Assembly: GCA_047495785.1 (NCBI GenBank)
Contig: JBLDXI010000054.1
Coordinates: forward strand, 3,596,001 to 3,660,000
Direction: 5' to 3'
Length of the DNA stretch: 64,000 nucleotides
DNA from: Lepidodermella squamata
Lineage: Eukaryota > Animalia > Gastrotricha
Shown here: positions 19,001 to 58,759 of the stretch, piece after piece
How positions within the stretch are numbered: position 1 is the stretch's first letter
Layout of the letters: every line of letters begins with the position of its first letter
The notes under the pieces: generated by a model
What the model was told of the DNA's origin: nothing
The model's database searches: none
The model's input: only the letters and a program-made list of their open reading frames with translations
Position numbers and translations under genes: made by a program

Positions 19001-22000
19001 TCAATACTCGACAGTGACGCATTTCGTCTTCAGGTATTCATTGAGCGCCTCCTCGCCCAGGTCCTTGCCGAAACCGGACTGCTTGAAGCCGCCAAACGGC
19101 GCGGCTACATCAGTTTTGTTGTAGGTATTCACGAAAACGGTGCCGGCTTCGAGGCGATCGGCAACTGTCAGCGCTTTGTTAATATCACGGGTGAAAACAC
19201 CGCTGGCCAAGCCGAATTCGGTACCATTAGCACGTTTGATGACTTCATCAATATCTCTGCAATAAAGAAAATTAAATAAAATTCGACGAAAATAGAAAAT
19301 AGGATTTTCATATTATATTAAGGAGGATTTTTTAAATAGACTGAGGGTAAAACTTAGGAAAAAATGTTTTTTTAAGATAAAAGCTTTCGCTCGAAAAATT
19401 CAAATTTGAAATTTGAACCTGGGGTGGGCGATGTGATAACTGATTTTCCAGCAAATTTGGAGAATTTTTCTATTTTTACCTGATTTTTTGGCAATTTAAA
19501 ACGTGTGGACTAAAACCTTGGCCAATTAACGGTTGATTTTGGCTTGTTAGTTTCAAGATCCCCCCTTGAAATATGGTACGGATTTTGAAGATGGGTCTCA
19601 AAACGACAACAAAAAACTGCCCTCACATTCTCGGAAAATCCGTTTTCCTTTCATATATTTTTTTTTTACTCAATTTTGATTTTAATTTTCATGTAAAATA
19701 GGGCTACAAGAAGGAGAATTCTGTGCAAAAAATCCTGTTTCCAATGAAAATTCAAGTCTGAAGGGTTCAATGATACCCTCCCCGCAATCTCCCATTCCCG
19801 CGGTATGGTAATCTCCAAAATCGAAATCAATAAAATTCAAAAAATTCAAAATTTTACCCGTCTTGGAATTTCGAAATGATCATAACTGGGCCGAAGGACT
19901 CTTCAATTGCGATGTAGTTGTCATCTTCGACTTCTGTGAACACGGTGGGCGTAAAGTACAACCCTGGTCTGTTGACCTGGGTGCCGCCGTATATCAGTTT
20001 CGCTCCTTCAGCAACACCACGCCGGCAGTACTCGACCAGCTTCTCCATGTGAGCGCGGTGGTTCTGCGGGCCGTGGTCAGTCGACCGGTCCAGCGGGTCG
20101 CCAATCTTCATTTTCTTGACCTCGTGTACAACCTGTTCGACAAATTCGTCGTGAATCGACGACTCGACAAACAACCGACCAGCGGCGATACAGTTCTCGC
20201 CCTTGTTGAAGAAAACAGCGCTCAGGGCCATGCGGACAGCCTTTTCAAGATCGCAATCGTTGAAAATGATCAGCGGACTCTTGCCGCCGAGTTCGAGTGA
20301 AACTTTCTTCAAATTGCTCTTCGCGCAACTCTCCATGATAGTTTTGCCGATATCCGTCGAGCCGGTGAAGCCGATTTTGCGAACACGGGGGTGGTCGGCC
20401 AGCGCCTGGCCAACAACAGCGCCAGACCCGGGGATAATATTGATAACGCCAGGCGGGAAGCCAGCTTTCGCGACGAGCTCGCCGAACTTCAAAGCAGTCA
20501 GTGACGTAACTTGGGCTGGTTTCAGGACAACAACATTGCCAGCGGCGAGGCACGCCGACATTTTCCACGCCAGCATCATAAGCGGGTAGTTCCACGGGAT
20601 GATAATGCCGCAAATGCCGACCGGTTCCTTCTTCGTGAACGTCAAATTGGCATTAGGCCGGGCGTTGTTGATCGGAATTGTCCTGCCCTGGATTTTGTCG
20701 CACCAACCGGCAAAGTAGCGGAACGTGTCGATCGACATGCCAATGTGCGTTTTCAGGGCCAGGGTGTACACAGCCCCGCTGTCAAGGCTCTCAAGAGTTG
20801 CCAGCTCCTCGCGATGCTGGTCCATCAACTCAGCGAGGCGGAACATGAGGGCGCCGCGGTCGCGAGCGTTCATTAAGCCCCACGGTCCGCGAAGAGCAGC
20901 CTTAAAAAATCAAATAAAAATTGCAATCAGACGAACAGGAAATTATATAAAAATCGACGCAAATATCATATTTTATAAACCAAATGAGTAGTCTCGATTT
21001 CTCATTTTTATCAGAAAATAACAACTTTTATTCGGTTGAAATGTCGTTCATGACTGAAAACTACCGAGTAGGCGATGCAGGTAGCCTCTGGCTTCTTGAC
21101 ATGGTTAACTACGCTACAATATCCCTACTAATGTTTTCGATCGCTGTTGGGATTACATGCAAGCTGTGCGACTTGTGCAATCGTTCCGTGCTTTATTTTC
21201 GTGAACTACACGAGCGGTACCGAGATAAAAAACGCCGCAAACCCGTCACCCTGGTCAGTATCGACCCGCCTGCGCAACTGCCGCACATTTACGTTCCTCG
21301 CAACGCTAACAAATCCGAATTTCGAGCGCATGTTTTAGCCGGTAATTTTCTACCACCAGGCAGTCCTATTTACTCGAATAGATTTCCCTTCGAAATTGAT
21401 GAGAAAACGCTTTGAAAAATAAAAATAATAACGCCTAATCGTACCTAAAGGAGAATTTTTTTATATTTATCGAAATTATAATGGATCGGTCCAAACCATA
21501 TCCCAAGTTGATATGCTCCTATTTTTAAGAGACCCTCGGGTTCTCCAATCCCTGAGCATCCTAAATCCTGAATAATTGGGCTCCCTAGGCTAAACTTGAT
21601 ATAATTTTTGATAGAAAATCGGAATACAGTATTCTAAGGACATTTCCAATGCCAAAATGTAGTTCACTCATGATGCAAAACTAACCTCAGCAGCATCAAC
21701 AGCCAACTCAACATCGTCCTTGTTGCCCTTAGAAACATGGCAAATGACAGACTCATCCGCTGGATTAACCGCCGGGAAAGTTTGGTTCGACAGCGAGTCG
21801 ACAAATTCGTTATTAATGAACAGCTGGTGTGGGAATTTGAGCTCCATATTATTGGCCTTGAGCACAACCGCGTCGTAGATGAACTCCTTCTTAGTCTCTA
21901 GACCGCGCTGTTTGCGAATAACCCGTTGCATGAGGCGGTCGAAAACCGGCGCCATGTACACGTCATCGGTGACCAATTTAACACCGCTGATTTTGAAATT

Positions 22001-23263
22001 AATCTCCTCAACAAGTCGAACAACGTCCATCGAACCGGCGCCAAGTTTGAAAAAGTCGCTGTCAGCGTCGATTTTGCTAGTGCCGAGAATGCCGGCCCAA
22101 ATATCGCGAATTTTCGCCTCAGATTCCTTCTCGCCATCCGTGGGCTCGAGCCGCTTCTCCTCAAGGTCAGTTCGACCGTAATCGCATGCATTGATCATAC
22201 GACCGTCTTCGAAAACAATCTGGCGAATGTTAACCGCCTTCCCGTCATTTCCGAAAAATAACATCCCACCGCGATGAACAATCGATGGTTTATTAGTTTC
22301 AGGCGCCTTATCCAGCTTAACTTCATTGCCGCGTGGGAAGAACGATTTCGACCAAACTTGCGAGCCGAAAAGCGTGACCTTTTGACCTCCAATCACAGTC
22401 CACGCCCCTGGGACTTTATCATTACCACGGATCCAGTTGTGAATCGCCTCGGCGGGTTGGTTCAAGTTAATTTCAACCAAATCCTTCTTAATCATTGCAT
22501 CGTAAGTCGCTCCCTCTTCTGTTTGCTTGATTTTCGGCGCTTTTCCCTCTGCGATCAATCGAACAGCTTTGGCCTACAAATAAAATTCAGGTAAATTTTG
22601 AATACATTTTACAAGTGTTAAATACCATAGCTTTGACACCGGCTGGGAATAAAAACCGGTTGTAAATCGAGTCCAAGGTGTCATTTGGGTCAAGTCGAAT
22701 ATCCTCTTGCAGCAAGATTTCACCAGTGTCAAGGCCGTCGTCAGGCCAGAAAATGGTGAAACCAGCCTTTTTATCGCCTTGCATCAAAGTCCTATCAGAC
22801 AAAATCTAAAAAAATAATACATAAAGTTGGCTTAATTTACCAATTAATAGCCGAAGCACCACGGTGTCTAGGCAAGATGGACGGATGGTAGCAAATTGAT
22901 TGATGTTTCGGGAAGTTGATGACGTCCATAGGAATGAATTGCGAGCAGAAGGCGAGTACGTTCAAATCGGCGTTCACCGATTTGTAAGCTTCAAACACCT
23001 CTGTGATGAGCGTTCCTTTAATACGCCATGTTTTGAACTTGAACACCTTCACTCCAGCCTTTTCAGCAGTTGCAGCTATTTAATCAATATTTCAGTCGTG
23101 TTTCTAGGTCAAAATGACGGTTTTACTAACCTAGAACATCAGGCTTTCCGCCCTGGTCAGGAATCGTGAAAACACCGACAATTTCGTGGCCTTCCTTTCG
23201 CAGCAGTTTGAATACTTCGGTGCCAAATTGACTCTGGCCGATGAGCGCAATTCGTAGAGGCAT
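19001..23263 (-). CDS. ALDH1L1: 10-formyltetrahydrofolate dehydrogenase (ALDH1L)
   Basis: Starts [14 protein letters not shown]; formyltransferase domain ([24 protein letters not shown]), ACP linker ([15 protein letters not shown]), ALDH domain ([27 protein letters not shown]), ends [10 protein letters not shown]. No obvious mitochondrial presequence. Confidence 0.96.
21041..21415 (+). CDS. Orphan single-pass membrane protein nested antisense in an ALDH1L intron
   Basis: 124-143 aa ORF inside the ~780-bp intron (~20902-21685); one TM segment followed by CKLCDLC and a basic stretch RYRDKKRRK; AATAAA 2 nt after the stop; similar to the gene at 23518. Confidence 0.65.
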   Translation: MSFMTENYRVGDAGSLWLLDMVNYATISLLMFSIAVGITCKLCDLCNRSVLYFRELHERYRDKKRRKPVTLVSIDPPAQLPHIYVPRNANKSEFRAHVLAGNFLPPGSPIYSNRFPFEIDEKTL

Positions 23264-23517
23264 GTTTTGCGTACCAGCAATCAATATCAATCAAGAAATA
23301 ACTTCCGTTCTAAAAGATGGCCAAAACAAACACAGCGTCAATTTAGATAAAGACCACAACAAAGGCAAGCAAGTTGCAGCAAATCAATCGATAACGCGAC
23401 TTAGGCAATGGGTGCGCAAAGTGAATCGACAGAAAACATTTAAGATTAGTAGTATTATTAGCTATTAAGGGCGCTAGTTATTTAGAGCTTTCAGCAAAAT
23501 ATCTATTTTTTTCAAAA

Positions 23518-24024
23518 ATGGAATCGACGACGGTTGATGGCGTGTATTTTCCTCCCGATGACGAGGAATACGACCCGCATCAATGGGTTCTAGCCCTGGT
23601 AACTCGAGCGCAGATAGGCATTGGGATTCTAACTGTCGGCGTGTATTCATTCGGTAAAATTGCGAATCCTCCTTAAAAATAATTCAACTAGTTTTTTACA
23701 GCGATTCTTTTCGACTATGGTCACCGATTTATGCACGCGGTGAGGCGGAGTCTCGCGCGAATGCGAAAACGTCGTCAAATCGCGTTGTTGCTGAGCGAGC
23801 AGAATCAAGTAACGTCGAGCATTGAGCGAAATGCTAAGCGATGGCGGCATGAAAAACGAGTCGTCTACGACCACGATCGCTATCTAACGTATCTGCCCAA
23901 ATTCCTCGGGCAAAATAAAGCGAAGCTCGCTCAGGCTGCCCAGCAATATACCTCACCGGGTAGATCGAGGCGAGGATTCATACCAGCTATTGTACCAGCT
24001 TATACTAATGAAGCGGCTGTATGA
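23518..24024 (+). CDS. Orphan single-pass membrane protein (2 exons; intron 23654-23701)
   Basis: AAAAATG start; spliced MESTTVDGVYFPPDDEEYDPHQWVLALVTRAQIGIGILTVGVYSF|AILFDYGHRFMHAVRRSLARMRKRRQ...; AATAAA at ~24042. Confidence 0.7.
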
Positions 24025-24443
24025 AAGGATCAATTTTTGGCAATAAAAACGACTGGATTGTAAAATTCGTCCAAAATAGAACTATGCCAAATTTTGCATT
24101 CTACAGCCGACCAGGCTTGGTTTAAACTCAATAGTAGCTACACGTTCGCGCGCAGCAGAGAAAAAACAATAATAATGTACGGACAGCTTGTTGCGAGAGA
24201 CATCTTTTGTTTGACCACAAAACTTCCACACATAAAACTATTGTCCCTTTTATCTAAAACCAAAGCAGCTTTGAGGCAGTTGAACTTCTCTTTATATAAT
24301 TATTATATATAGTTTTGCACAAAGGTACCTCCAAAGATAAGTAAGAATTATTATCACTAGACCGTAACCAGACATTTTATATCAACAAAACAACTATTTT
24401 AGATAAAAATAACCGGTGCTCAATTTCTCAAATCGTTCATCCG

Positions 24444-25437
24444 CTATTCATCGGCAGTGTGGTACAAAGACTGGAGTGACCGTTTCGTAACTTCATAGGC
24501 TAAAAATAAAGCACCAGTGGCAGGGAAAGTGCGCAGAAGGGTAGGACCAAGCCCTCGATATAATCCCCGAATTCCTTCGGTTCGAATAATTGAAAGCACC
24601 ATTTTGTACATTCCGTCTTGTTTTCCGAGAGATTTATCCATCGTCATCACTTGCTTCCGCGATTTTATCACATCAGCCGGAAATATAACTGCCCATAATG
24701 TGCAGCCGCCAATGCCACCTGAAATAATTGTAGGGATCGCTCCGATATCATCCTTGCTTTCGACTTTCAACATGTCTTTGAACGAAGTACGGGAAAGATC
24801 GTAGGCGGCGAAAAAGAAAAAGTAACCCGGCATTTCACGCCAAAATGTAGGCACCAAGCCATGATAAAATCCACGAACTCCTTCAGCTCTAAAAACATCA
24901 CGGCATAGAGCGAAAACTCCTGTTTGTGCCGCCTTGTTTTCAGCTCCCTTTTGCTCACGTAATGCCTGAATATAAATAATATGTTGCAAGCTTCAAAGTC
25001 GCTCAACGCAAACATACTTGAAGTCTGCATTTTACAAGTTCTGTTGGGCAGAGAGTAAGACTGGAGAAAAATGCCGCGCAAAAACCGGCAAGGCCATTTT
25101 CAAAGGTGCTCAGATCGTTTTCGTGCTTTTTACCAACTGAGCTCATAATAAGTCGTTGAACTGTTCCATAGCACATAAACAAGACTGAGTTTTCAGCAAC
25201 GTTAGCAGCGATTGCTGGCAGCGTTCCAGCGTAAAGTCCGTTGCGAACGCCTTCAACTCGTAGAGTTGTAGTAAAACAACTCAGTGCGTTTTTATAGAGA
25301 TGCGGGAAGGTTTGGATTTTGACTTTCACGGTGTCCAACGGTTGGCCAACTAATACTGAAACTGTCCCGCCGAGAGTGCCACCGGTGAAGTCCACAATCG
25401 AATCAAGTGCGCTTTGCTCAGCTTTTTCTGTCCTCAT
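24444..25437 (-). CDS. SLC25A15: Mitochondrial ornithine carrier (SLC25A15/ORNT-like), 2 exons
   Basis: Three carrier motifs (QPLDTVKVKIQ, CPTELVKCRLQ, FPADVIKSRKQ) plus ornithine-carrier residues ANVAENSVLF, REMPGYFFFF, RTFPATGALFLAYE. Confidence 0.92.
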
Positions 25438-25586
25438 GATGGTATTAATAAATGAGATTTCAAGTAATTCAGATCCTAAATGATAAAAAATACACAAATC
25501 ACTCAGGGTACACTTCAATGTAAAAATAGCACCGCAAATAAATAAATGATGATCATCATAAAACTATTTCAAGGACTAATAATGAA

Positions 25587-26177
25587 TCATGAAAGCACTT
25601 TGTTGAGCCATACAACAGCATCAGTTCGTTGAATTAGCCCTCCTTCGTTCGACTTTGCGGCATTGACAGCAGCAAGTTTTTCAAGAAATCCAGCGGGTAT
25701 CATGCCCTGAGCAATACCTGAAGCGTATGCGATCGGTTCACAAGGAATGTAACCAAGCCGTCGGTAAAACTCAGCCTGTTCGGGCTTGGCTGTCAAGACA
25801 ATGCGGTTGCGGGGAGGATTGAGCTTATTGAGCATGTACTCTTCGATAAAAGCAACTAGAATCCGTCCAAGGCCTTTTCCACGAAGGTCCTTTCGAATTA
25901 CAACGCTTTCCAGCAGGCAAGCATTGTCCAGACCGACAACAGCCGATAACTGACAATAACCAACAGCAGAGAAAGGTTGGTGGCTAGAAACGAGGGAAAA
26001 GGAAGTAGGCAACGCGTCGCGTGAACGGGAAATCGCTCGATGACGCAATGCTTCGGCTCGCGGCCATTCACTTTGAAGAATTTCAATTATCTCAGCATGA
26101 ATTTTAGACATTGTCTCAGCAGAATCAAACGATGCATGGAGTGGGACCAAAGAGTATTCGTTCGGTAAGTATGGCAT
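25587..26177 (-). CDS. NAA80: N-alpha-acetyltransferase 80 (actin N-terminal acetyltransferase, GNAT)
   Basis: LVPLH...SEWPR...SRSRDALP...LLESVVIRKDLRGKGLGR...FYRRLGY...WLNK matches the NAA80/NAT6 pattern. Confidence 0.85.
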   Translation of the reverse strand: MPYLPNEYSLVPLHASFDSAETMSKIHAEIIEILQSEWPRAEALRHRAISRSRDALPTSFSLVSSHQPFSAVGYCQLSAVVGLDNACLLESVVIRKDLRGKGLGRILVAFIEEYMLNKLNPPRNRIVLTAKPEQAEFYRRLGYIPCEPIAYASGIAQGMIPAGFLEKLAAVNAAKSNEGGLIQRTDAVVWLNKVLS

Positions 26178-27280
26178 TTGCGCCGTAGGAAACTGCTGAG
26201 TAATCGCCCTACATGAATGAAAAATAAAATTTGTAAAATGTTTCGCCACGCAAGTCAGATTGACGAGGTCAAGTGATAACAAATGGACTGTACGAGACAC
26301 GAGCTTGAACTAAGCACGTGTTCCAGCCATATAAGAAAGTTTGAGTAAATTAATTAGCAACCAGTCAAAATAATGTATGACTCGGCAGAAACGATGAAGA
26401 TCTTTCTGTTTTCTCTGTGTCTTTGATTGATCACTGTAAACACTCTGATTCTGAACTCTCAAGTAACCCACAATGAGCAGTATAACATACGTAATCAAGG
26501 ACTAGAAGCCCTGAAGCCTATGAGGTTAGGAACTTTCTTGTTGTCCTTCGATGCCAAAAATAAACTAAAATCTCAAAGATCAGCTGGAAATACCTGGATT
26601 GCAAATCGGCCCAGTAGTCCAGGAGGTTTATAGTTTTGTTGTATTCTCTCCTGCTTGCAGGCGCACGTGAGATGGGCGATATGGTCTGTTCTGTTACGAT
26701 GCCGGCCCGTCATCCATTATCGTTCGTAATTTACCGAGCGTTATCATCAGCTGCCCTGAATTAAGTGGGTCCGTCATTCAACTACGGCTGCGAACTCGCA
26801 GAAAGTTATGTCTCTGATGCAAATTTTGCGCGGCAAAATCTCACTCCAAGAGCCACAAGAGCGCCGAAATTAAGGGCACGACGGAGGCATTCAAATCGCG
26901 GCTTGGGTCAAGCCGGCAAGGGCCGGCGCCGATTTGCCCTTATTCACCCGTGCGCACATCGCCCGCATTATCCCCCTGGGCGCACCGCCGCCCCCATTTT
27001 CCGCTACCTGAGCCCCACGCCCGTTCTCTCTGCTCGCCTGCCGCTACCGAGCCGGTCGCCCCGTATGTCGGCGCACCTGAACTCCTGGTAGCCGATCTGC
27101 TTCCGGCGCTCCTGAAGCCTACCGATGATAGTGAGCAATTATTCTTCTCTCGATGCTGCTGCGATCATCACTCGTTGATTTGGCATAGCTCTCCTTCCTA
27201 CTCGTTTGCATTCATAAATCCATCCATGTATCGCTCATCTATCTAGCTCGCTGTGGGGTGCGCAAGCGAGAGGAAGCGGA

Positions 27281-27360
27281 GCCCACTGAGAGGGAGCCCT
27301 CTGAGAGTGAGCCATCTGAGGGGTAGGCCCTATACTTAATGGCTACCCTCTGAGAGGGCA
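27281..27360. repeat. Four degenerate copies of a GCCCTCTGAGAG-like motif in the divergent NAA80 / snoRNA-host intergenic region
   Basis: gcccactgagag, gccctctgagag, gccatctgaggg, accctctgagag within 80 bp. Confidence 0.5.
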
Positions 27361-27928
27361 TTTCTACCCACGAAATTGAAAATGGCCTCACGTGAAATTG
27401 AACCTCACGTAGGTACCAGTTTTCATTTCGACGTTTTTGAAAAATTCCCCGACGATAAACTAACTAAGCTTATGGTTCTCTACGAACAAGGCTGTTTTGT
27501 GGTACTTTTATCTTTGCAAACTATTTCCAAGTCCGATGTCTCACATCGAGGGTGTGTCAACCAAAGGTAAAACCGCAAGGTAAACGGCGAAATACGCTAT
27601 ACCGCCATTTCTGACAACTATTTAGTTTCGAACTCCTTAATTGCAAAAATTGAAATTAATATTCAGTTTTTATATTAATAATATTTATGTAATATTGTAA
27701 ATGTCAGCTGACCTGAAACGCGTGGTACCCTCAGTTAGGCGTGCTTTTTGGTCTGTTTGTTGGCAGCGTGCTAAGCCATGCGTCACCACCACATAAATAC
27801 GACGATTTGCGATGTTCTATTCAATCAAGTCAGTCTTCATTCGTTTATTGCTTATTACATCATCTCCTCACGCAATCCACTCATCCTCACGAAATGGTTA
27901 GTCTACAAGCCTTGAAAGCAAAGTTTGC

Positions 27929-28004
27929 TTCTCAAATGATGCAAAACAAATGATAATTGAAAATTCATGATCATTATCGAGCTTTTTAACTCTGAACTTT
28001 GAGA
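27929..28004 (+). ncRNA. SNORD36: Box C/D snoRNA, SNORD36/snR47 family, copy 1
   Basis: C box ATGATGC (27936), D box CTGA (27992), terminal stem TTCTCAA/TTGAGAA. Guide CGAGCTTTTTAACT is complementary to the conserved 18S AGTTAAAAAGCTCG. Confidence 0.88.
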
Positions 28005-28197
28005 AAGTTTTTAACTATGTCGTTCAGTGACTAATCATTATTCTAAAACGCATTTCTTTTGTTAATTGCAGCTTGAATCGCGAAGCCAAGCTCCAAGCTC
28101 CCTAATCTGTCATCTCTCCACTGGCCCAGGCCACTTTGTACGAAGTCTCGTCTGATTATTTCAGGTATTGTTGAGATACCCATTAGTTTTGAATACG

Positions 28198-28265
28198 ATT
28201 TTATGATGCATTATTAATCCTGATTACAATGATTTATCATTTCGAGCTTTTTAACACTGACTTCG
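28198..28265 (+). ncRNA. SNORD36: Box C/D snoRNA, SNORD36/snR47 family, copy 2
   Basis: C box ATGATGC (28203), D' CTGA (28220), C'-like ATGATTT, and CGAGCTTTTTAACA-CTGA (D box 28257), as in vertebrate U36. Confidence 0.88.
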
Positions 28266-28410
28266 ATATACCATCAACTCTCTTCGATTGATTAGTCAAA
28301 CGTTGATAGCTAATTTGTTCGTTTATTCCAACAGTTTTGTGCCTTGCGAGCCATGTAAAAGCAGAATCTACTGCATCTATATGTAAGTCGCCGTGTTTTT
28401 ATTAATTTGA

Positions 28411-28540
28411 TTGCACCTGGTATCTACGGCGGCGACAAACTGTGTCGTCATCGTTCAATTGTGTGCGATATGAACTCATTGTCATCGTTTTCTCATTGCT
28501 TCATCGTAGTAATGCGAATGGTTAAACCTCTGATACATTT
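28411..28540 (+). ncRNA. SNORA8: Box H/ACA snoRNA, SNORA8/snR31-like
   Basis: Two hairpins, H box ATATGA (28468), ACA (28535) followed by TTT. Pocket 1 (GGTATCT / TCGT) fits 18S ACGA-UC-AGAUACC; pocket 2 (CATCGTT / TGGT) fits 18S ACCA-UA-AACGAUG. These are the two recalled SNORA8 targets. Confidence 0.78.
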
Positions 28541-28644
28541 TGTTTTGCAGAATTCCAAGTCATTCCAATGTGAGCGACAGCTTGAAATCGCGTCTGTCTT
28601 GATCGAGAACCAGGTAAATTACTAAAATATTTCATCTATCTAGA

Positions 28645-28782
28645 ATGCATTAGTTATTGGCACAAGTTATGAACATGTAACAGTTCTTGACTTGACAACT
28701 AAATGCTACATTCAGCCATATTGCAACTTCGTTTTAGCATTTTACCCTGTTGCATAACGATTACTAAAAGATGGCAACATTT
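28645..28782 (+). ncRNA. Box H/ACA snoRNA candidate (pocket 1 fits 18S CAAGUC-UG-GUGCCA, SNORA24-like target)
   Basis: Hairpins GCATTAGTT/AACTAAATGC and GCCAT/ATGGC, ACA-TTT at 28777, pocket strands TGGCAC and GACTTG. H box is non-canonical (ACATTC). Confidence 0.62.
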
Positions 28783-28883
28783 TCTATTTCAGATCAATGC
28801 ATCGTTCAATTCGCGCTACTAATCCCGACTTTGATTGGCTTTATTATTCGAGGTTTGTCTTTCGATATTATAATTCATTAGTT

Positions 28884-29016
28884 GTGCAACATTACCAGCG
28901 AGGCTTCTCTGTTGAGTGAGTCGATCTTTCTAATCTTGTTGCTACATTAACGTAAATAGTTTGAGAGTGCTATCATTCATAGCGTTGATAGTTTTCTTAG
29001 GAATTCCACTACATTT
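28884..29016 (+). ncRNA. Box H/ACA snoRNA candidate
   Basis: Hairpin GCAACA/TGTTGC, H box ACATTA (28944), second hairpin GCTATCA/TGATAGT, ACA-TTT at 29011. The 3' pocket TTAGGAATTCC is complementary to 18S GGAAUUCCUAG and starts 14 nt from ACA. Confidence 0.65.
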
Positions 29017-29257
29017 CATATTTCATCTAGGTTGCTAACGGTCCAATCGATACTTGTGCCTAAATATGATGAGGTAAGCTGAACATTCTCTAATGTCACT
29101 TTCATTATTTCGTTTTAATTTCAGGGTTTGAAGAGTACTGTACCCTAGCCACAACAATCCTCGTTTCCTCTGGACTATTTATCTCGGAATTTCTTATTCG
29201 GAGTATTATGTTTTCTAGTTATATTTTGTTACAAATAAAACTGATCGGTGCCTCAAT

Positions 29258-30552
29258 ATGCCATTGTTTACTCCTACAAACCAAAAACGTCTAACAAATG
29301 TTGCTGTTGTGCGTCTGAGGAAAGGCGGCAAGCGCTTCGAGATCGCCTGCTACCCGAATAAGGTCAATGCCTGGCGAGAAAAGCTGGAAAAAGATTTGGA
29401 CGAGGTTTTGCAAGCTCGCCAAGTCTTCACCAACGTTTCTAAAGGCGAAGGCGCAAAGAAAGACGAACTGGCCAAGGCTTTTGGCTTTGACGATCTCGAC
29501 AAAATTTGCATCGAGGTTGATTATTTTATTAGATTATCTGAACGATTTTACTAGTTTTTGTTGTAACGCAAATCAGATTTTGGACAAAGGCGAACTTCAA
29601 GTTTCTGCCAAGGAACGAGAAGAACAGCTTGACTCGCAATTCAAGGAAATCGCCACGATCGTAGCCTCGAAATGCATTAATCCTGTCACTAAAAAGCTGT
29701 ACACTGTTACAAGTATCGAGCAGGCTATGAAAGGTACTAGTCTCGCTAAATTTGAATTATTAGCTTTTTTACAATCTTGCTTGCATTGATAAGATGCTCA
29801 CATTGCGCTGAGGCCGAATCGAAATGCGAAGCAGCAAGCTTTAGAGGCTATTCGGAAGTTGAAAGATACGGGTCTCAAAATCCAACGTGCACGCATGCGT
29901 CTGTCGATCGCGGTTTCGAAGCGATCAGTCGCCGAGAAGCTTCGCCCTCTTGCATTCAAGCTCGAGAGCGAATCGTATGATGAAGACTCGCATGTTACTA
30001 CGATGGTTTTGATCTGCGAACCAGCTGACTACCGAACTATCGATGAACTGGTCGCGAAAAGCGCTGTCAGTGACAAAAGCGGCGCTCAAGCTGTTGCTAA
30101 AGTTGAGATCGTCGATTTACAGGTAAATTGATGAACAAATTACCTATCCTCTTAGGTTCTATTGATTTATTCTTCAGGTTCCGCTCGATGAAGACGAAGA
30201 CGAAGGTGACGATGAACCCCATCAGGAAACAGCTCACGCCTCGAAGCCTGCCAAGGGCGCGAAACCACATCACGATGAAGAAGAACACGAGAAAGAAGCT
30301 CCGTCGAAAGCTTCAAAGAAGAAACCCGCAAAGAAGGCTGACAGTGATGAAGACGAGGAGCCTCATCGCGGGCGCGGGAAGCATCAGCAACTAGGAGAAA
30401 TCGAAGTGCCCCGTGTCGAATCAGCCAAGGGTGGTAAGAAGGGGCAGAAGGGTCCGAAACCGGCGGTAAACAAAGCGGACGATTCCGATGATGACCAATC
30501 TCATCGTCGCAGCAATCGCGGCAAATTCATTGACGTTCCGACTGATGATTGA
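29258..30552 (+). CDS. SBDS: Ribosome maturation protein SBDS with C-terminal charged extension (4 exons)
   Basis: [61 protein letters not shown]; last exon 30178-30552 is a D/E/K-rich tail. Confidence 0.96.
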
Positions 30553-31984
30553 AAACATTTCAACAATAACTCAACAGCTGTATTTGCCAGTAATATTCTT
30601 CGTGCTATGACTTTCAGGAATTATTCATAAAGAGTTATTGTAATTTGGTACCAGAGCTTCTACGTCTCTTTTGTAACAGTTGATAAAAATAAAGTTAAAT
30701 AAAGTTTAAAATGTTAAACGGTTGTTGGATTTGGGCTTTGAGCCGCTGTTATTTTCTATACCTAGCTTGCGAGTTGCGGGACAAGGTATCCTGATGCGAA
30801 ATGCAGAATGAGTAATACCGAAATACATGCAACTTTGCTCGTTTTTTATTACTTGCTTTTGAATTTCTTGAACTTCAAATGTTATAATAATAATAATGCA
30901 GTTGCATAATAATGCAAATAATGCAGTTGAAGTTAATTTTATCTTCTTCAGTGATTGTACACATTTTCTATAAAGATTTTTCATTACTTCAAAACAATTT
31001 TCATAGGAGCTTAGAGGAACAAAGACGTTTTTTGCTACTTCGTTCAACTCATTTGTTTCGATTAGGTAATATTGCGGGAAATTTGTTTTGAAGAAATGAA
31101 AAACACGACAAAAGGTGTTATCGACACTCGAAATGGCAGAGAAATGAACTTACTTGAGCAATTTTTTACCACTAGAATCAATGGTGGAAAAGAGGTTTTT
31201 CAAAAATGATAGGGCAGAGAAATTTTGGACAGTGTAACTTTGCCGGCTTTGCAGGTAAACCACTTTGCAATGCCGGACTATAAAAGTAATGTGTTTGTTG
31301 AATTAAATTTTCCATCTCTTGAGCATTCTAATGGCGCAAGTCCCAAGGTGACAGGAGCAATACTTGATTTTTGAGAAATATTATAAGCAAGGAACTCAAA
31401 CGTCGATTTGGGCCCCATCATATCTCACCAACGAAAAATGATTTCGTGACAAAAATTGGCAACGACGTACATCGCTCGCCCGTTATCGATATTAAAATCT
31501 AGATCCGACGATTGTTTTGTAGTGCTTCCAGGTGAAAATCAAATTAGAAATTATTCCGAAATAATTGAAACTGAAAACTCACAGTGCCATTTCGTATACA
31601 AATGAGCAGCACCAAAAATTACACACCAAATTTGTCCAATTTTTTCTTTTCGATCGTGAAAAATCAGGATAATCACCAAAATGAACAGATAAATCGGTCA
31701 CCTCCTTACACACCTTTGTACTAAACACCATCGATTTCTGAATCAAGACTGATTTTTAATCCTCGAAAACACCGTTTCGTCCAAAATTACCCCTCCCTAC
31801 TCCCTACGCCCTACGGTACATTAATTAAATAGTTTAGGAAGTATCAATGTCATCTCATTCTTTGATTTACAAGTCTTCTCCAACTGCTGTCTGAGTTGGC
31901 TTAGCTGAAATTTATGCTCATCACATTCAGAGTTATTACGTCTGGAAACTTTTTGCCCCTCAATGCTTTTTTGGCTTATGAAAA

Positions 31985-48524: not shown

Positions 48525-49832
48525 TTAAGACTCATTGTCGTGAGCTGTGATCATCAAATAGAATATAGCTGAATCAGCTATAATGTTAACAAGTACGACG
48601 ATGGAGAAAAATACGATATCAACAAATTCAATCAGGCCTATTTCAAGCTTTCTGTTCTGCTTACATAACAGCCCGCACAATGACAGACGGCAGGTCTTTA
48701 TCCCATCCATTTCCACCAACCTATTGCCGATCAAGGTGAAAATGGTACAGACGACTGCAGTCGCAGATTTTCCAAGTAAAAACAGAAATATATAAGGTGT
48801 GTCGGCATACACGGGCATCTTATCACTCAGAGAGGTCTGAAGAACCATGACTGAAAGCAGTACGGTTGTGCAATAGATCGGCCGATCAGGGTGGCCGGCT
48901 GGCATGATTCCGGCGACGAGGAGAAGCAAAACAAGGAAATAACCCGGTACAAATACCGTTACCATGTAGACCTTATAATTTCGTTGAAATCTCACGTTGA
49001 AATCCACGCGGTCGTAGTACAGGCCATATTTTCCAAGCACTTGCTGGCTGGTGGTGTATACTTTTGTGATGAGCCAAAGGCCACCTGGCTCATTGAATTC
49101 AGTCCAGTTATGAATGAAGAAACTATCAGCTGGATCTAAGATCAGGCGTTGAGTTGTATTAGGATCAGAAGATTGGTAGGCGAAATAGCATGTCTGTCTG
49201 TCAAACGGAAACGACTTCATTCTGAAACCACGAAAAGTCATGGTAATGATCTTAAGTCTTAAGCAATATTCAACATACTCAACTGTACAATCAGCATTGA
49301 GTATTGAGTTGATCTTCCAGTCAATGTAGCCTTTATTTATTGCCACTTCACTCCTATCCGCGTTGTCCGCAAAGAACGAAGATTCCTGGATAGCATCTAA
49401 GGGGTACAATTTAGGCAGCCAGAAGTTGTTGGCTCTATCACGGAGTTCAACCCCAACGGGATAGGATTCATAAGATTCCATGAGATTTATCAAACACGGG
49501 TGTTCCCACCGCAATTCTATCGTCCCTTTCACGGAAAAGCCATAATCGTCGATGTCGCGAAATTTAGTGAGGATCAGGTTGACATGGACTTCAACGGGGT
49601 CGGTTAAGAACCATGTTCCATTTTTGCTGTCCATGTCCATCGAATGTGATTTGAACGGTATTAATGTAACATCGTCCAAGTAACAATCTTTAATGATTGA
49701 TGCTTTGAACGACACTAACTTTGCCGAAAAGCTGTTCCAATTATTCACGACTTTTTCAGTTGACAGCACTAGATGCCACGCTGGAGAAAATATTAATATC
49801 CCAGATATGAAACAGCGCCTGGAATCCCCCAT
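48525..49832 (-). CDS. Divergent Cys-loop ligand-gated ion channel subunit, copy 1
   Basis: Signal peptide, WLPK loop A, C-x13-C Cys-loop (CTVE|MKSFPFDRQTC, split by a stop-free 57-nt intron), four TM helices, M2 TVLLS. Confidence 0.9.
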   Translation of the reverse strand: MGDSRRCFISGILIFSPAWHLVLSTEKVVNNWNSFSAKLVSFKASIIKDCYLDDVTLIPFKSHSMDMDSKNGTWFLTDPVEVHVNLILTKFRDIDDYGFSVKGTIELRWEHPCLINLMESYESYPVGVELRDRANNFWLPKLYPLDAIQESSFFADNADRSEVAINKGYIDWKINSILNADCTVEYVEYCLRLKIITMTFRGFRMKSFPFDRQTCYFAYQSSDPNTTQRLILDPADSFFIHNWTEFNEPGGLWLITKVYTTSQQVLGKYGLYYDRVDFNVRFQRNYKVYMVTVFVPGYFLVLLLLVAGIMPAGHPDRPIYCTTVLLSVMVLQTSLSDKMPVYADTPYIFLFLLGKSATAVVCTIFTLIGNRLVEMDGIKTCRLSLCGLLCKQNRKLEIGLIEFVDIVFFSIVVLVNIIADSAIFYLMITAHDNES

Positions 49833-50667
49833 TTTTGAACTGTTTATATATGTATAGTACTATATTTAAAAAGGATACGCCAGACGGGTATTATTTAAGG
49901 TTCCTTGGATTGCCGAAGATGCTGATCAATCCTTTGCTAGAAACTTTGATGTGTAGGAGTAGGATGCAGTGTTATTTGCTCAAAGAGATTCGTATTATTT
50001 TGATATGGTACAGTGCGAAAGCGGAAGCTGGAAATTCCAAGTAAACTCAACAGGCTAGAGGAGCTGCCATGAAACTTGTTTGGTGATGGGAGCTCAACAT
50101 TATTTATAGCCTATATTAAATGTGAGCGAAATCGTTGAAATCGATACAGCTTGTCAAAAGTTCTTTGTGCTGTATTTATTGTTTTTACTTCGTCAAAACC
50201 ATAGAGCTAGTTTTAAAAGTCAAAACACTAAATCGTCGGCTCAGATAATACGAAATGGTAATACGTGAAAACACGCCTGAACAAGATCATTACTTAACCA
50301 CGGCAGTGGCCATGAAATAGATTACTGCAGCGTCTGCTTTGACGATGATTAACGAGACAGGGGAGAAAAATAAAATAACAATATCAAGGATGTCGTTCGA
50401 AACTGACGGAAATAGCCAGCTGTACCTAAAGCAAAAGGACAGGCAGCTTTCTGCAAAAGGTCCTGCACTTTATTTAGCGAAGCAAAATCGGCAAATTCAC
50501 TCAAAAAAATTAGCAGGTCAGATTCTTCCCACGTATGAAGCGAGCCATAAATCGGACAGTGCGGAATGTGGCATTTCAATTAACAGTTTTCTTTCCCGCG
50601 TCTGGCCGTGTGCACCCTTCCGGGCTTTAAAGAAGACAAACCCTGAAAATTCTGATAGCTTTACTTA

Positions 50668-50899
50668 CCGTAAAGCGGTACAATTTTGAACAAGTACAAA
50701 GTTGAACATTTTTTCAAAAGTACAATTTTGAACGAACGTTTGCATTGAAAATTTCGTTAATGTTCAAAATTGTACTTCACACTCACGAAAGTACAATTGT
50801 GAACACTTTCATTTTTTTCAATGCAAACGTTCGTTCAAAATTGTACTTTTGAAAAAATGTTCAAAGTTGTACCCTGTTCAAAATTGTACCGCTCTACGG
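50668..50899. mobile_element. Palindromic MITE with CCGTA termini and TA target duplication (Tc1/mariner-pogo type)
   Basis: TA|CCGTAAAGCGGTACAATTTTGAACA ... TGTTCAAAATTGTACCGCTCTACGG|TA; internal repeats of GTACAATTTTGAAC. Confidence 0.85.
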
Positions 50900-51012
50900 T
50901 ATAGCTAACAACTTCGAATCACAAGAGGATCACAAGAGGAAAGAATGAAAGGAATCGCAGCGGCATAATCGACGTTCGCGACTCCTTCAAATGCCATGCC
51001 TCAGATTCTGCT

Positions 51013-52310
51013 TCATGGCTTCTCACTGTCATAAGCTGTAATCATGAAATAAAATATAGCTGTATCGGCGGACACGTTAACTACTGCGACTACAGAGAAA
51101 AACACGATATCAATCATTTCAATAAGGCCCAGTTCTATTTTTTTGCCCAATGCCCGCGATGACCAGCACAATTTCAGACGGCAGCTCTTTATCGCTTCCT
51201 TCTCCAAAATTCTGTTGCCGATCAAGGTGAATAGCGTACACACGACTGCGGTCGCTGATTTGCCGAGAAGAAACAGGAAAATATATGGCGTGTCAGCGTA
51301 AACTGGCATCCTATCAGTCAGAGAGGTCTGAAGAACTATCACCGAGAGTAGGACAGTTGTGCAGTAGATCGGGCGATCAGGGCGGCCGGCAGGCATGACA
51401 CCGGCAGCAAGAAGAAGGAAAACCAGAAAGTAACCCGGTAGGAAAACCGTTACCATGTAGACCTTGTAGTTGCGTTGAAACCGCACGTTGAAATCCACTC
51501 GGTCATAGTACAGGCCATCATCGCCTAACACCTGCCTGGTAGAAGTGTATACGTTTTTAATCAGCCAAAGACCTCCCGGTTCATTAAACTCGGTCCAATT
51601 CCGAATGTTGAAAGCATGGGCTGGGTCTGGGATCAGGCGCTGAGTTGTGTTGGGATCTGAGGATTGGTAAGCAAAGTAGCATGTTTGCCTGTCGAACGGG
51701 AACGGCTTCACTCTGAAATGAAGGAAAGGTTTATAGTTGACTTCAAAGAATGTCTGCCATACTCAATGGTGCAGTCAGAATTCAGGATGGAATTCACCCT
51801 CCACTCAATGTAACCATTTTTTATCGTTACTTCGCTCCTATCCGCTCGGTCAAGGAAGAAGGAAGCTTCTTGAACAGCATCCAAAGGGTAGAGCTTTGGC
51901 ACCCAGATACTGCTAGCCTTTTCTCGTAATTCGACGCCTGTTGGAAAAGTTTCCGAGGGTTGCATAACGCCTTTTAAACACGGATGATCCCATTGCAATT
52001 TTATAGTTCCTTTAACCGAAAAGCCGTACTCATTGACGTCGCGAAATTTACTGAAAAAGAGGTTGATGCGGATCTCAACGGGGTCGGGCGAGCAATTAGT
52101 TCCATTCTCGCAATTCATGGTCATTGTGTAAGCTTTGAAAGGAATCAAAGTCACATCATCCAAGTAACACTGTTTTATAATTGAGGCTTTGAGAGAGGCC
52201 AATTCGGTTGAAAAGCTTTTCCAATCCCCGATTATTTCGTCCGAACTCTGTTGCCACGTTGGGGAAAACAATAATATAAGCGATACGAAACGCGACAACC
52301 TTGATTTCAT
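51013..52310 (-). CDS. Divergent Cys-loop channel subunit, copy 2
   Basis: Same two-exon structure and motifs as copy 1. Confidence 0.9.
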
Positions 52311-53359
52311 TGTGCTAACTACACGAATAAAAAATGTGTAGTAAGCCAAGTTTTAAGGGGTCTCGGACACAAGCTCAAACAAAGTTGGACAAAAGTGAGT
52401 TTCGATAGCGTGTAATCAGTCACCGAGCAATGAAGCTCAACAACTACGCCAACTCGCTTTCGATGTAAAGTGAAGCTCAAAACACCTAATATGCGTATAG
52501 CTTTTCTCTGAATAGACGAATTCCATCAAAGAGAAAGTATGAACCAAATAGTGGGAACAAAAATGCAATCGCCCTCTGTTGCTTAGAGATATACAAATTA
52601 CAAATCGTTGAATGATGGACAGGCGACCGAGGTTCGAACCTCATCTCGTTCAATACTTTCTTAGTCTACAGGAGACCTCCTAAAACATTGGTTAACTACA
52701 AATACAAAAACATTAGAGTTTGGGAACGTTTAAAAATGCAATAGTAATAAGGAATAAAGCCGTGCAATTTTTTCGTGTTATGCGCAATGAAATGACTGTT
52801 ATGCGCACCGCTTACTTTTTTGATATCCATTCATATGGTTTTTTGCTGCGTAAATCGATTCGCTTGTCGATGACTGAAGAGAAAAGTCGAGTGGTTCAAA
52901 TTTTGAGTGCTATATTATAACCGAATTTCCGGCAGAATTAATCATGGGAATTTAAAAAGCACGGTATAAATAACGTCTATAGCGCATTTGTCGTTTACGC
53001 AAATTTAGTTCGTCAATGCCCACCGACAAAGCTTTACTACAAGGCCCAAGTAATGTTCTCCTCTCGAATTACTCGAACAAAAAACCTTTCAATTCTTCTG
53101 TAAAGCTTTCTGATCCCTTGAAGCATGCTTGCAGAACCAGGTTTAAGGCGTCCCCGTCGGAACATAAACAATGGAAACGTTGACATATATGTATTTTCTC
53201 TGCTAATGTAAATGTAAATGTACTGTGTGGAAGGCTCACATTTTTATGCAATTTGCATTGCCATGAACATTCACAAATTTAACAAATTTAACAAAAATTG
53301 GGTATTCACGAGTAAATATCAAATGAGTATAAAGCAGAGCTGGAAAACATGCAAAATTT

Positions 53360-54130
53360 CCTGGGAACGTCGATGCGTGTCTGATCCACAAGCTCTCCCT
53401 GCTGCCGCTGTCGCAAAACCTTGTTGACTGGATGGCCGACTACTTACGCGATCGCCGCCTCCAGGCCCGTGTCGCCGGATCCCTCAGTCATACTCATACT
53501 CATTTTTATTTGCAAATCGTAATGAACAGTTAGCAAATGGTAAATTTCAATGATCAGCAAGTATGTGATTTCGAGGCGCCTCACCGCAGATGTTACATGT
53601 TTATCAAATAGAGCAGAATTATGTTTAATATAGTTGCAGAACACTTGATGAGAATTATTTACGACAACAGAAGACAGACGGTTCCACGCAGCACGAACAC
53701 GCCTAGAGATGCAGAATTTATAGCTTAGGTTATTTCTACACGCGCTCATCTTCACAGAGTGAGGAGGTAGGCGAGAATCCCGGCAGATTTCAAAGAAATC
53801 AGAGAAACCAATGTCAACTAATCCCTGATACATTTTATGCATCAAAATCAAATCATGTTGGAGGCGGCGAACTTCAAGCGTCGTTAAGCCCAGTTTTTTC
53901 AGACGATCTTCGTAAGAGGCACCTTCGACCGATTCGACAGGTTACGGTTAATTGCGGTGTCCCACAGGGTTCCCCGCTCTCTCCGCATTTGTACACTGCC
54001 AACCTTCTCTCGACGCCCAGTGTCAATGGTGCCCTGCTCCTGGCTTACGCCGACGATCTTACCGTCGTAAACGAAGGGCGGTCTGTCAAAGCGGCGCAAC
54101 GCTGTACGCAGCTTGAACATATCCGGGTTT
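53360..54130 (+). mobile_element. Non-LTR retrotransposon reverse-transcriptase relic, interrupted by another LINE
   Basis: LIHKLSLLPLSQNLVDWMADYLRDRRLQARVAGSLS (to ~53490) resumes as VTVNCGVPQGSPLSPHLY...LLAYADDLTV (from ~53940). Confidence 0.82.
53487..53935 (-). mobile_element. 5'-truncated CR1-type LINE 3' end
   Basis: SYEDRLKKLGLTTLEVRRLQHDLILMHKM...RVRAAWNRL (CR1 ORF2 C-terminus), then AATAAA and an (ATGAGT)3-like tail. Confidence 0.82.
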
Positions 54131-54799
54131 TTCCGGCGTGCCCTGCACACCCCTGGTATTTCACGTCATTGGCGGCGGACGTTGTACCTCACGCTGAGCC
54201 ATTCGATCTGGTCGTTCGGCAATATCTACGTCTCCTCCGCGTCGAAACAGCAGCTGCGGCGGCTCTCTGTCAACTCAACAGGCTACAGAAGAGCTGTCAT
54301 GAAACGTGTTTGGTGATTGAAGCTCATCATTATTTATAGCCTATAGCCTGAGCTTAGGTACGCAATTGGAGGCGAACCGGTATTTATTACTTTTACTTAT
54401 TAAAACACTAAATCCCCGGCTCATACCCCTAAAACATTCTACGGGTGTTTTCGCTTTTAATTTGGAATACCTAACCTTAAAATAATCCTGAACAACTTCG
54501 GTTAAAAATATCAGAAAAACAAGTTTAACCCCAACTGGCAATTTGTTAAGAGTTGTTAATTTGTTCAGGGATTTTTAGCTTGCTTCATATTGATGGCGAA
54601 ACAACCGGAGGATACTTCGATTAGGACCTACATCGGGATATTTCGTTCGGGCGTCTGCCCCTTTTGAGCTACAAGGAAATAAAACGATAGCTTATTTACT
54701 AGCTGACATCGAAAAAGTCAGGCGAAGGAAGAATCATAAGAAATCATGGCGGCAATCAGCCTTGAGACTTCTACAAATGCCATGCATCGGATTCTTGAC

Positions 54800-56092
54800 T
54801 CAAGACTTCTCACTGTCATAGGCTGTGACCATGAAATAGAATAAAGCTGAATCAACCATCACGTTAACTACAGTGACTGCAGAGAAAAACACGATATCAA
54901 TCATTTCAATAAGACCGAGTTCCAGTTTTTTATCCCACGTTCGTGATAACCAGCATAATGTCAGATTGCAGTTCTTTATCGCTTCCTTCTCCACAATTCT
55001 GTTACCGATGAGGGTGAAAAGCGTACAGACGACTGCAGTTGCAGATTTGCCGAGTAAGAACATGAATATATATGGCGTGTCAGCGTAAACAGGCATCCTA
55101 TCAGTCAGAGAGGTCTGAAGAACTATCACCGAGAGTAGGACAGTTGTGCAGTAGATCGGGCGATCAGGGCGGCCGGCGGGCATGACACCGGCAACAAGCA
55201 GAAGAAAAACCAGAAAGTAACCCGGTATGAAAACCGTTACCATGTAGACCTTATAATTGCGTTGAAACCTCACGTTGAAATCCACTCGGTCGTAGTACAG
55301 GCCATCATCGCCTAACACCTGCCTGGTAGAAGTGTATACGTTTTTTATCAGCCAAAGACCTCCGGGCTCATTGAACTCGGTCCAATTCCGAATGCTGAAA
55401 TCATCGCCTGGGTCGGGGATTAGGCGTTGAGTTGTGTTGGGGTCAGAAGACTGGTAAGCAAAGTAGCATGTCTGCCTGTCAAACGGGAACGGCTTCACTC
55501 TGAAAGTAGTGAAAATTAATGTCTTGATTTCAAGCGATTTTTAAAAACCAAACTCAATAGTGCAATCAGAAGTTAGGATCGCGTTCACCCTCCACTCGAT
55601 GTAACCATTCCTTATCGTCACTTCGCTCCTATCCGCTCGGTCAGAGAAGAAGGAAGCTTCTAGAACAGCATCTAGAGGGTAGAGCTTGGGAACCCAGATA
55701 CTGCTAGCTTTTTCTTTTAATTCGACGCCAGCTGGAAAAGTTTGCATAACGCTTTTCAAACACGGATGATCCCATTGCAATTTTACGGTTCCTTTCACCG
55801 AAAACCCATACTCGTTGACGTCGCGAAATTTACTGAAAAAGAGGTTGATGCGGATCTCGACAGGATCGGCTGAGCAATTTGTTCCATTTTCGCAATCCAC
55901 GTTCATTGTGTATGCTTTGAAAGGTATTAAGGTGACATCGCCCAAGTAACATTGTTTTATAATTGATGCTTTGAGAGAGACCAATGTAGATGAAAAGCTT
56001 CTCCAATCCTCGACTTTCATGTCTGAACTCTGTTGCCATGTTGGAGAAAATAATAATATAACCGATATGAAACACCAGCAACTGGATTTCAT
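54800..56092 (-). CDS. Divergent Cys-loop channel subunit, copy 3
   Basis: Same two-exon structure and motifs; closest to copy 2. Confidence 0.9.
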
Positions 56093-58148: not shown

Positions 58149-58759
58149 TTGTGAACTAAGTTTGAGAACAATAGAATAGTTTCTTCAAAACTTTCTTCGA
58201 TGGGGAATATTTTCTTAGATTTTGGGCGTAACAGATAACTAAGCAAACAATCAATTGAATACATAAACAGGATGAAATGTTTGCTCAATTTTCCTGTCAA
58301 GATATATTCACAAAATACTCTTGAAGAGAACAATTTGATGACAGGGTGGGAACGAATGCATATCCCACTGAAAATAATTGCCGTTCGATTCATTTGACTA
58401 GACACTGTAATGAGAAATGTTTGAAGTCGACGAGAACTCAAAGCTCAATTTATCTGCTAGCCGGAAATGAGAGATTTCTCGATAATCGATAACTCCCAGG
58501 TGTTATACCTCGATACTCTGCTGTCTTCGTTTTAGATGGATTGGAGTCATCATTAAAGAAATCAATTCATTCCAGCCATTTATAATGAGCAAACCGTTGA
58601 ACAACTTTCATTTTTATTTGTTGCCATTACTCCACCGCTCATTAAAGGTTCCGTTTTGATTTGGTAAATTTTTCATATAATTCATAACGTACGCAACGAC
58701 AGCGTCAATTTGATGCAAAGCGAAATGAGTGTTATAGTATAGAATTCTCGCTTCTCGCT

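Follow-up and report, generated by a model that had tools for sequence, protein, structure and literature searches.

Non-coding host genes of small nucleolar RNAs (snoRNAs), such as UHG, GAS5 and the SNHG genes, give rise to spliced and usually polyadenylated transcripts from a 5'-terminal oligopyrimidine (5'-TOP) promoter. A different arrangement is known from human SNHG3-RCC1, where non-coding leader exons with snoRNAs in their introns lie upstream of a protein gene, have a promoter in common with it and can be spliced onto it. Well established, too, are the outrons and SL1-type (spliced-leader) operons of C. elegans, with a splice acceptor near the ATG that lacks an upstream donor; in the operons, AAUAAA precedes the trans-splice site by a few tens of bases, so that the two processing events compete. 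The locus described here lies in a stretch of 64,000 nucleotides from the gastrotrich Lepidodermella squamata (GenBank assembly GCA_047495785.1, contig JBLDXI010000054.1, positions 3,596,001 to 3,660,000, forward strand), referred to as the window, by which all positions are numbered. In front of the gene for the ribosome-maturation factor SBDS, a chain of short exons with five snoRNAs in its introns extends directly to the SBDS start codon. The exons of this chain are non-coding, and the gene that carries the snoRNAs is real and conserved. According to the reading favoured here, to which a probability of about one in two is given, host and SBDS form one transcription unit, from which SBDS would be released by spliced-leader trans-splicing at 29218/29219.

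At this locus, as in the UHG/GAS5/SNHG hosts, snoRNAs occur singly in their introns, the exons are short, with many upstream ATGs and no conserved frame, and they drift around snoRNAs that are kept. In contrast to these hosts, the last exon of the locus meets a protein-coding start codon without any spacer. The likeness to SNHG3-RCC1 consists in a snoRNA-bearing chain of non-coding exons ahead of a protein gene; however, the downstream gene is SBDS, and the leader may be discarded, as the organism probably uses spliced-leader trans-splicing. An acceptor close to the ATG and without upstream donor recalls the outrons and SL1-type operons of C. elegans, as does the location of a poly(A) signal and a candidate trans-splice site within a few tens of bases of each other. 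Compared with these operons the order of the two signals is reversed, AATAAA following the candidate acceptor by 15 nt, and a non-coding host of snoRNAs takes the place of the upstream 'cistron'. Both kinds of arrangement are known, non-coding hosts as well as protein genes that follow leader exons with snoRNAs in their introns. The novelty of SBDS as a snoRNA host, implied by an earlier annotation of the bare letters (here termed the sequence-only reading), is smaller than it seemed, since protein genes with such leader exons have already been described, SNHG3-RCC1 among them. A coupling of the host to SBDS in particular is plausible. In the literature no paper was found that describes an outron with snoRNAs in its introns, nor one that deals with trans-splicing in gastrotrichs.

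Structure of the host unit and of SBDS

The genome of L. squamata comprises 121 Mb and has very short introns. The stretch of about 1.4 kb 5' of the SBDS ATG was parsed for GT..AG introns and compared with a relative represented by ENA metagenome contigs (L005-L008) as well as with a second, closer relative (L009), whose contig contains only 147 nt 5' of SBDS. Parsing resulted in a host unit on the plus strand (27830-29257) with 7 short non-coding exons of 43-133 nt each and 6 introns. Exon 1 (27830-27896), the 5' start of which is presumptive, is followed by intron 1 (27897-28071, 175 nt, GTTAGT..GCAG), exon 2 (28072-28164), intron 2 (28165-28334, 170 nt), exon 3 (28335-28382), intron 3 (28383-28550, 168 nt), exon 4 (28551-28613), intron 4 (28614-28792, 179 nt), exon 5 (28793-28852), intron 5 (28853-29030, 178 nt) and exon 6 (29031-29073). 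Intron 6 (29074-29124) is of ordinary size with 51 nt and contains no snoRNA, and the last non-coding exon, exon 7 (29125-29257), continues gapless into the start codon of SBDS. Introns 1 to 5 are about three times as long as is the norm in their surroundings, where introns measure 51-61 nt (61, 60 and 55 nt within SBDS), and each of them holds one snoRNA. The sequence-only reading had described a chain of short non-coding exons with five uniform introns of about 170 nt, each harboring one snoRNA, two of them SNORD36-like C/D and three H/ACA. Both statements are borne out, the former by intron lengths of 168-179 nt and the latter by Rfam matches, folds and orthologues.

Joined to each other, the host exons amount to 507 nt and contain 7 upstream ATGs. 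The longest reading frame spans 40 codons (local count), and the most downstream of the upstream frames extends over the SBDS ATG in a different frame. In the presumed promoter region 5' of exon 1, a motif CAGCTG..ACCT..CGCGTGG (27705-27725, plus strand) is also present in the relative (L006, 2150-2170), and its distance to the first splice donor is about 190 nt here and 185 nt in L006. A TATA-like element CATAAATA (27792-27799, plus strand) is situated about 30 nt 5' of the initiator (Inr)-like string TCAGTC at 27830, and at the matching place the relative has CTATTTAAG. Since the shared motif and the TATA-like strings sit at matching distances 5' of exon 1 in both species, the combination with the Inr-like string suggests that host transcription starts near 27830.

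The gene downstream of the host encodes a protein of 372 residues, whose identity as SBDS/SDO1 follows exon by exon from Pfam matches to SBDS_N, domain II and the C-terminal domain. On the plus strand, coding exon 1 (29258-29515) matches SBDS_N (E = 2e-24), coding exon 2 (29577-29733) SBDS_domain_II and coding exon 3 (29794-30122) both SBDS_domain_II and SBDS_C. Coding exon 4 (30178-30552), defined by its reading frame, adds a charged tail followed by the stop codon. This tail (30178-30549) consists of 124 residues, is acidic and lysine-rich and has no Pfam match; a similar extension is found in the reading frame of the relative. Typical SBDS proteins have about 250 residues. Two AATAAA detected by motif search at 30688-30703 are likely the poly(A) signals of SBDS. 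The N-terminus of the protein is conserved from the Met at 29258.

The intronic snoRNAs and their conservation

Introns 1 and 2 contain C/D snoRNAs of the SNORD36 type (Rfam RF00049, gathering cut-off 30 bits). Copy 1 in intron 1 (27931-28005, plus strand) is SNORD36-like, with a match of 29.3 bits at 27934-28000 that stays just under the cut-off; it displays a C box TGATGC, a D box CTGA and a terminal stem CTCAAA/TTTGAG of 6 bp. Copy 2 in intron 2 (28189-28267, plus strand) exceeds the cut-off with 36.5 bits and has an orthologue in the relative (L006, 2371-2439). C and D boxes are shared with the SNORD36 family, as is the guide GAGCUUUUUAAC adjoining the D box and aimed at a conserved site in the 18S ribosomal RNA (rRNA). 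In contrast to vertebrates, where SNORD36 resides in introns of RPL7A, the host is a different one and carries two copies in tandem. Targets were searched against the 18S and 28S ribosomal DNA (rDNA) of the same genome. The D-box guide of copy 1 forms a perfect duplex of 14 bp with 18S 611-624, that of copy 2 a perfect duplex of 13 bp with 18S 612-624, in each case more than the 10 bp required of such a guide. For both copies the fifth paired base from the D box is A615, the predicted methylation site, which is the one guided by SNORD36 in other animals (A668 in human). The D' guides of both C/D snoRNAs gave no convincing match in the organism's own rRNA. Both snoRNAs end 66-67 nt 5' of the 3' splice site (66 nt for copy 1), which is near the known optimum for the assembly of intronic C/D snoRNAs.

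At least two further SNORD36 matches exist elsewhere in the genome. The best-scoring one, with 40.5 bits (L034 1501-1574, corresponding to G000:C21:2608769-2608842), is located between exons of a gene for mitochondrial Hsp70 (HSPA9-like), and a fourth, weaker copy is found on C25.

Introns 3, 4 and 5 each fold into a hairpin-hinge-hairpin-ACA structure, the ACA being three nucleotides away from the predicted 3' terminus. The H box consensus ANANNA is present in the snoRNAs of intron 3 (28410-28540, plus strand; ATATGA at 28468, ACA at 28535) and intron 5 (28884-29016, plus strand; ACATTA at 28944, ACA at 29011), and the ACA is followed by TTT. The snoRNA of intron 4 (28647-28782, plus strand; ACA at 28777) has the hinge ACATTCA (28708-28714) and its counterpart in L006 has AGAATGA (around 2897-2903), which in both species corresponds to ANANNNA and is thus one base over the consensus. 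A scan of each intron against Rfam, as proposed by the sequence-only reading, recovered SNORD36 in introns 1 and 2 and a weak match in intron 5. The snoRNAs of introns 3 and 4 could be assigned to no Rfam family, also under permissive search settings, the sole match being a spurious U7. The weak match in intron 5 is to SNORA9 (RF00411), with 28 bits and E = 0.005 in a search of 3.1 kb. The intron 5 RNA shares with SNORA9 the overall H/ACA alignment, CCAGC and GUUUGAG as strings in the pockets, and a predicted pocket match in 28S rRNA; however, its score remains far under the family cut-off of 85 bits, hence it is labelled SNORA9-like only. This snoRNA exists as a single copy in the genome, and no orthologue was found on the contigs of the relative.

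For the other two H/ACA snoRNAs orthologues are present in the relative. Comparison of the two intron 3 sequences (orthologue in intron B of L006) revealed that both pockets are kept and that 3 base pairs have changed in a compensatory manner; the two intron 4 sequences (orthologue in intron C of L006) align with z = 15 and show 4 compensatory pairs. In both orthologue pairs, few or no differences occur in the pocket strands and boxes, and the upper stems have diverged. Folding z-scores of the H/ACA candidates are unremarkable (+0.2 to -2.0), and thermodynamics is uninformative for these RNAs.

A candidate H/ACA target was kept only if its guide string is also preserved in the relative or if it agrees with the rRNA known for the family. 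Since shuffled rRNA scores as high, the predicted targets rest on guide conservation and agreement with known sites and not on statistics; all four predictions given here fall within the score range of shuffled rRNA. The pocket CATCGTT/TGGTTA in hairpin 2 of the intron 3 snoRNA could form 13 bp around 18S U1028, 16 nt from the ACA. For the intron 4 snoRNA, the predicted targets are 18S U556 for hairpin 1 (10 bp, distance 14) and 18S U1123 for hairpin 2 (11 bp). Hairpin 2 of the SNORA9-like snoRNA, with the pocket AGTTTGAG/TAGG, could form 12 bp around 28S U1276 at a distance of 13, where 14-16 nt to the box are expected of an H/ACA pocket. For hairpin 1 of the snoRNAs in introns 3 and 5, the rRNA pocket searches left no target. 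If the offset from the SNORD36 site is taken as constant, in place of an alignment with human rRNA, 18S U556 would correspond to human U609, a pseudouridine guided by SNORA24 (PMC6776443). SNORA9 has been assigned to helices 37/38a (H37/H38a) of 28S rRNA (PMC12288042), in agreement with the match of the intron 5 snoRNA, which thus probably guides modification of 28S rather than 18S rRNA. The claim of the sequence-only reading that all guides match 18S rRNA consequently stands for four of the five snoRNAs and falls for the SNORA9-like one, the best fit of which is 28S U1276. With these RNAs, five snoRNAs with concrete target predictions are added in a phylum nearly without RNA annotation.

The H/ACA snoRNAs end 10-14 nt 5' of the 3' splice site (28535-28550, 28777-28792 and 29011-29030). 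In intron B of the relative (L006, 2737-2745) ACATTT directly adjoins the CAG acceptor. The strings that most resemble branch points, for example CTGAT at 28530-28534, are positioned within the last stem of the H/ACA snoRNA. Due to this overlap, splicing and assembly of the H/ACA small nucleolar ribonucleoprotein may compete with each other or be coupled.

The relative represented by L005-L008 is 85% identical to L. squamata in SBDS exon 1, 63% in SBDS exon 3 and 59% in the neighbouring gene for a GNAT acetyltransferase, and identity in SBDS exon 1 reaches 92% for L009. Synteny in relatives had been suggested as a check on the locus, and the order GNAT, host, SBDS is indeed kept in the relative; there, the last host exon also runs into the SBDS ATG. 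SBDS in the relative is preceded by large introns, three in number (163, 174 and 181 nt), which hold a SNORD36-like RNA and the orthologues of the intron 3 and intron 4 snoRNAs. Splice sites are conserved between both species and intron sizes are uniform. The snoRNAs align with z = 5.5-15, whereas the internal host exons resemble shuffled sequence with z-scores from -0.4 to 0.9. Similarity to the relative is lacking in exon 1 (z = 0.9) and likewise in exon 4 when compared with its matching exon (z = -0.4), and even the two contigs of the relative are distinguished by indels in one host exon. In exon 7, weak conservation is confined to the last 45 nt or so (z = 2.6). As judged from these alignments, conserved snoRNAs between drifting exons are what textbooks describe for non-coding hosts of the UHG/GAS5 type. 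The locus is evidence that the rule 'conserved snoRNAs, disposable exons' for host genes holds in gastrotrichs as well. An apparent difference of one intron between the spacers of L005 and L006 was rejected, as L005 contains a run of N.

Scanning of JGI metagenome contigs with SBDS exon 1 yielded no close relative, the best match being 71% identical. Of 23 more distant SBDS loci from the metagenome-contig scan, 20 were examined, and none of them had a snoRNA in its vicinity that reaches the Rfam gathering score. For this reason the linkage of a snoRNA host to SBDS looks lineage-specific.

The junction between host and SBDS

At the junction, AATAAA occupies 29234-29239 on the plus strand, 18 nt 5' of the SBDS ATG (29258), exactly where the sequence-only reading had placed it. 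The plus strand contains three AATAAA in all between 27 and 31 kb, the other two being the 3' signals of SBDS. AATAAA is found at the same place in L006 and is absent in L009. No AG dinucleotide exists between AATAAA and the SBDS ATG, and therefore no splice acceptor can follow this signal. The only acceptor-like site before the ATG is TTTTCTAG (29211-29218, plus strand), a candidate trans-splice site which lies 39 nt 5' of the ATG and 15 nt 5' of AATAAA and is orphaned, the sequence from intron 6 up to this site containing no donor. A TAG 38-39 nt 5' of the SBDS ATG is common to all three species (window, L006 and L009). Moreover, a pyrimidine tract with TAG also precedes the neighbouring genes for GNAT (at -33) and a mitochondrial carrier (at -41). 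TATA-like strings are situated 60-85 nt 5' of the SBDS ATG in the window and in L006, at positions that do not align between the species.

Because the last exon runs into the ATG and no acceptor follows AATAAA, trans-splicing at the orphan acceptor is considered the most likely route to SBDS mRNA. We infer a primary transcript which would start at a TATA/Inr-type promoter near 27830 and from which five introns of about 170 nt would be spliced out, each to be trimmed to one snoRNA. The predicted products are two SNORD36-type guides for 18S A615, two H/ACA snoRNAs for 18S rRNA and one SNORA9-like RNA, most likely for 28S rRNA, and the host exons would be disposable. SBDS mRNA would be cut from the same primary transcript by a spliced leader joined at 29211-29218, leaving a 5' untranslated region (UTR) of 39 nt, so that the snoRNA-bearing exon chain would effectively be the outron of SBDS. 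If trans-splicing fails, the AATAAA 15 nt past the acceptor may serve as an alternative end of the transcript. The further proposition, that the chain is discarded as an outron at leader joining, that AATAAA provides a competing end without SBDS and that one promoter couples both products, is put forward tentatively.

Were SBDS carried on a shared transcript, this would mean a compact co-regulation of rRNA-modification guides with a ribosome-maturation factor. Should the chain be an outron, one promoter would couple guides mostly for the small-subunit rRNA to a maturation factor of the large subunit, in a layout kept in two diverged lineages, and its removal by leader splicing would represent a use of outrons for which no description was found in the literature.

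In the rDNA repeat (L004 7426-7800, minus strand) the 5S gene is encoded on the strand opposite to 18S and 28S. Just upstream of 5S lies a module resembling a spliced-leader RNA, with an exon of about 30 nt, a GTATGA donor, an Sm-like site AATTTGAGGG and a terminal stem-loop. At least 40 copies exist, many of them about 8.5 kb apart and repeating with the rDNA unit. This multicopy module in the rDNA spacer is a candidate spliced-leader RNA and would fit the use of trans-splicing.

How SBDS is separated from the host is the point on which the possible readings diverge. The sequence-only reading had offered a dicistronic unit resolved at AATAAA. In its classical form, with the host cleaved and polyadenylated after AATAAA and SBDS trans-spliced downstream of that signal, this idea would account for the tight spacing. 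It fails, however, on the lack of any AG between AATAAA and the ATG, the only acceptor-like site lying 15 nt upstream of the signal, and a later acceptor would truncate a protein whose N-terminus is conserved from its first Met. Cleavage after AATAAA with trans-splicing downstream is excluded on these grounds, and the sole AATAAA at the junction does not stand in the order of poly(A) signal before acceptor. The classical dicistron is accordingly regarded as highly improbable. Hardly credible is a chance origin of snoRNAs and introns as look-alikes in AT-rich intergenic DNA. Such an origin could draw on two H/ACA candidates without Rfam match, on unremarkable folding z-scores and on target scores in the range of shuffled rRNA; against it stand a SNORD36 match exceeding the Rfam cut-off (copy 2), perfect guides of 13-14 bp to the known SNORD36 site, orthologues with compensatory changes between non-conserved exons, conserved splice sites and uniform intron sizes. 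Even taken jointly, the classical dicistron and the chance pattern are very improbable and contradicted by sequence and conservation.

Two other explanations deserve more weight. If SBDS mRNA kept the non-coding exons, spliced in cis, as an extended leader at its 5' end, SBDS itself would be the snoRNA host, similar to human SNHG3-RCC1. The continuity of the last non-coding exon with the ATG and the preservation of this arrangement in the relative speak for such a leader. However, with 507 nt, 7 upstream ATGs and a last upstream frame that overlaps the SBDS ATG out of frame, it would be ill suited to the translation of a housekeeping protein; its exons are not conserved, an AATAAA within a leader 18 nt before the ATG is odd, and an unpaired acceptor is present 39 nt ahead of the ATG. 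A retained leader is for these reasons thought unlikely. Doubtful as well, though a more serious contender, is the view of two slightly overlapping genes, in which the host would be polyadenylated by means of the AATAAA at 29234 and cleaved around the SBDS ATG, and SBDS would have a promoter of its own within the last exon or intron 6. The rarity of AATAAA in this region (1 per kb, three between 27 and 31 kb), its presence at the same place in L006, the TATA-like strings 60-85 nt before the ATG in window and L006 and the confinement of weak conservation to the 45 nt before the ATG speak for this view. On the other hand, the TATA-like strings do not align across species, L009 has no AATAAA, a promoter confined to about 130 nt within an exon that is actively transcribed would be subject to interference, and the neighbouring genes show the same pattern of an acceptor before the ATG.

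Release of SBDS by a spliced leader from a shared transcript is favoured over these explanations because there is no spacer, the acceptor is orphaned, the same motif recurs at neighbouring genes and the leader of 507 nt appears poorly translatable. Several observations weigh against it. The AATAAA kept in two of the three species lies downstream of the acceptor and fits a poly(A) end of the host overlapping the SBDS 5' UTR, and, given the TATA-like strings in the last exon, SBDS could have a start of its own. In L006 the candidate acceptor has a weak pyrimidine tract. For the H/ACA snoRNAs, the target scores from the brute-force pocket search do not exceed those of the shuffled-rRNA controls. 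A word search of the protein collection with SBDS exon 1 retrieved relatives only and no product of this species; relatives only were also retrieved with the C-terminal frame of the relative, in a length range that covers 372 residues, and for the neighbouring GNAT neither exact look-up nor word search revealed a product of this species in the collection.

Neighbourhood of the locus

Diverging from host and SBDS, the genes for the GNAT acetyltransferase, the mitochondrial carrier and a 10-formyltetrahydrofolate (10-formyl-THF) dehydrogenase are arranged head to tail on the minus strand of the window (19854-26177). GNAT and carrier are separated by a gap of about 150 nt, and a TAG acceptor-like site is situated before the carrier ATG. 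The order of the three genes is kept in the relative (L005, 10-5876), which argues for an operon-like cluster.

Between this cluster and the host, a GC-rich repeat with units like GAGGGAGCCCTCTGAGAG occupies 27260-27390 of the window, and paired inverted copies of it are found on contigs C15, C33, C9 and C55. The stretch resembles a terminal repeat such as DNA transposons or miniature inverted-repeat transposable elements (MITEs) possess. The repeat explains part of the roughly 1.2 kb by which the spacer between GNAT and host is longer than in the relative. At the far end of the window, tandemly arrayed reading frames that resemble Cys-loop channels occupy 48525-63879 on the minus strand.

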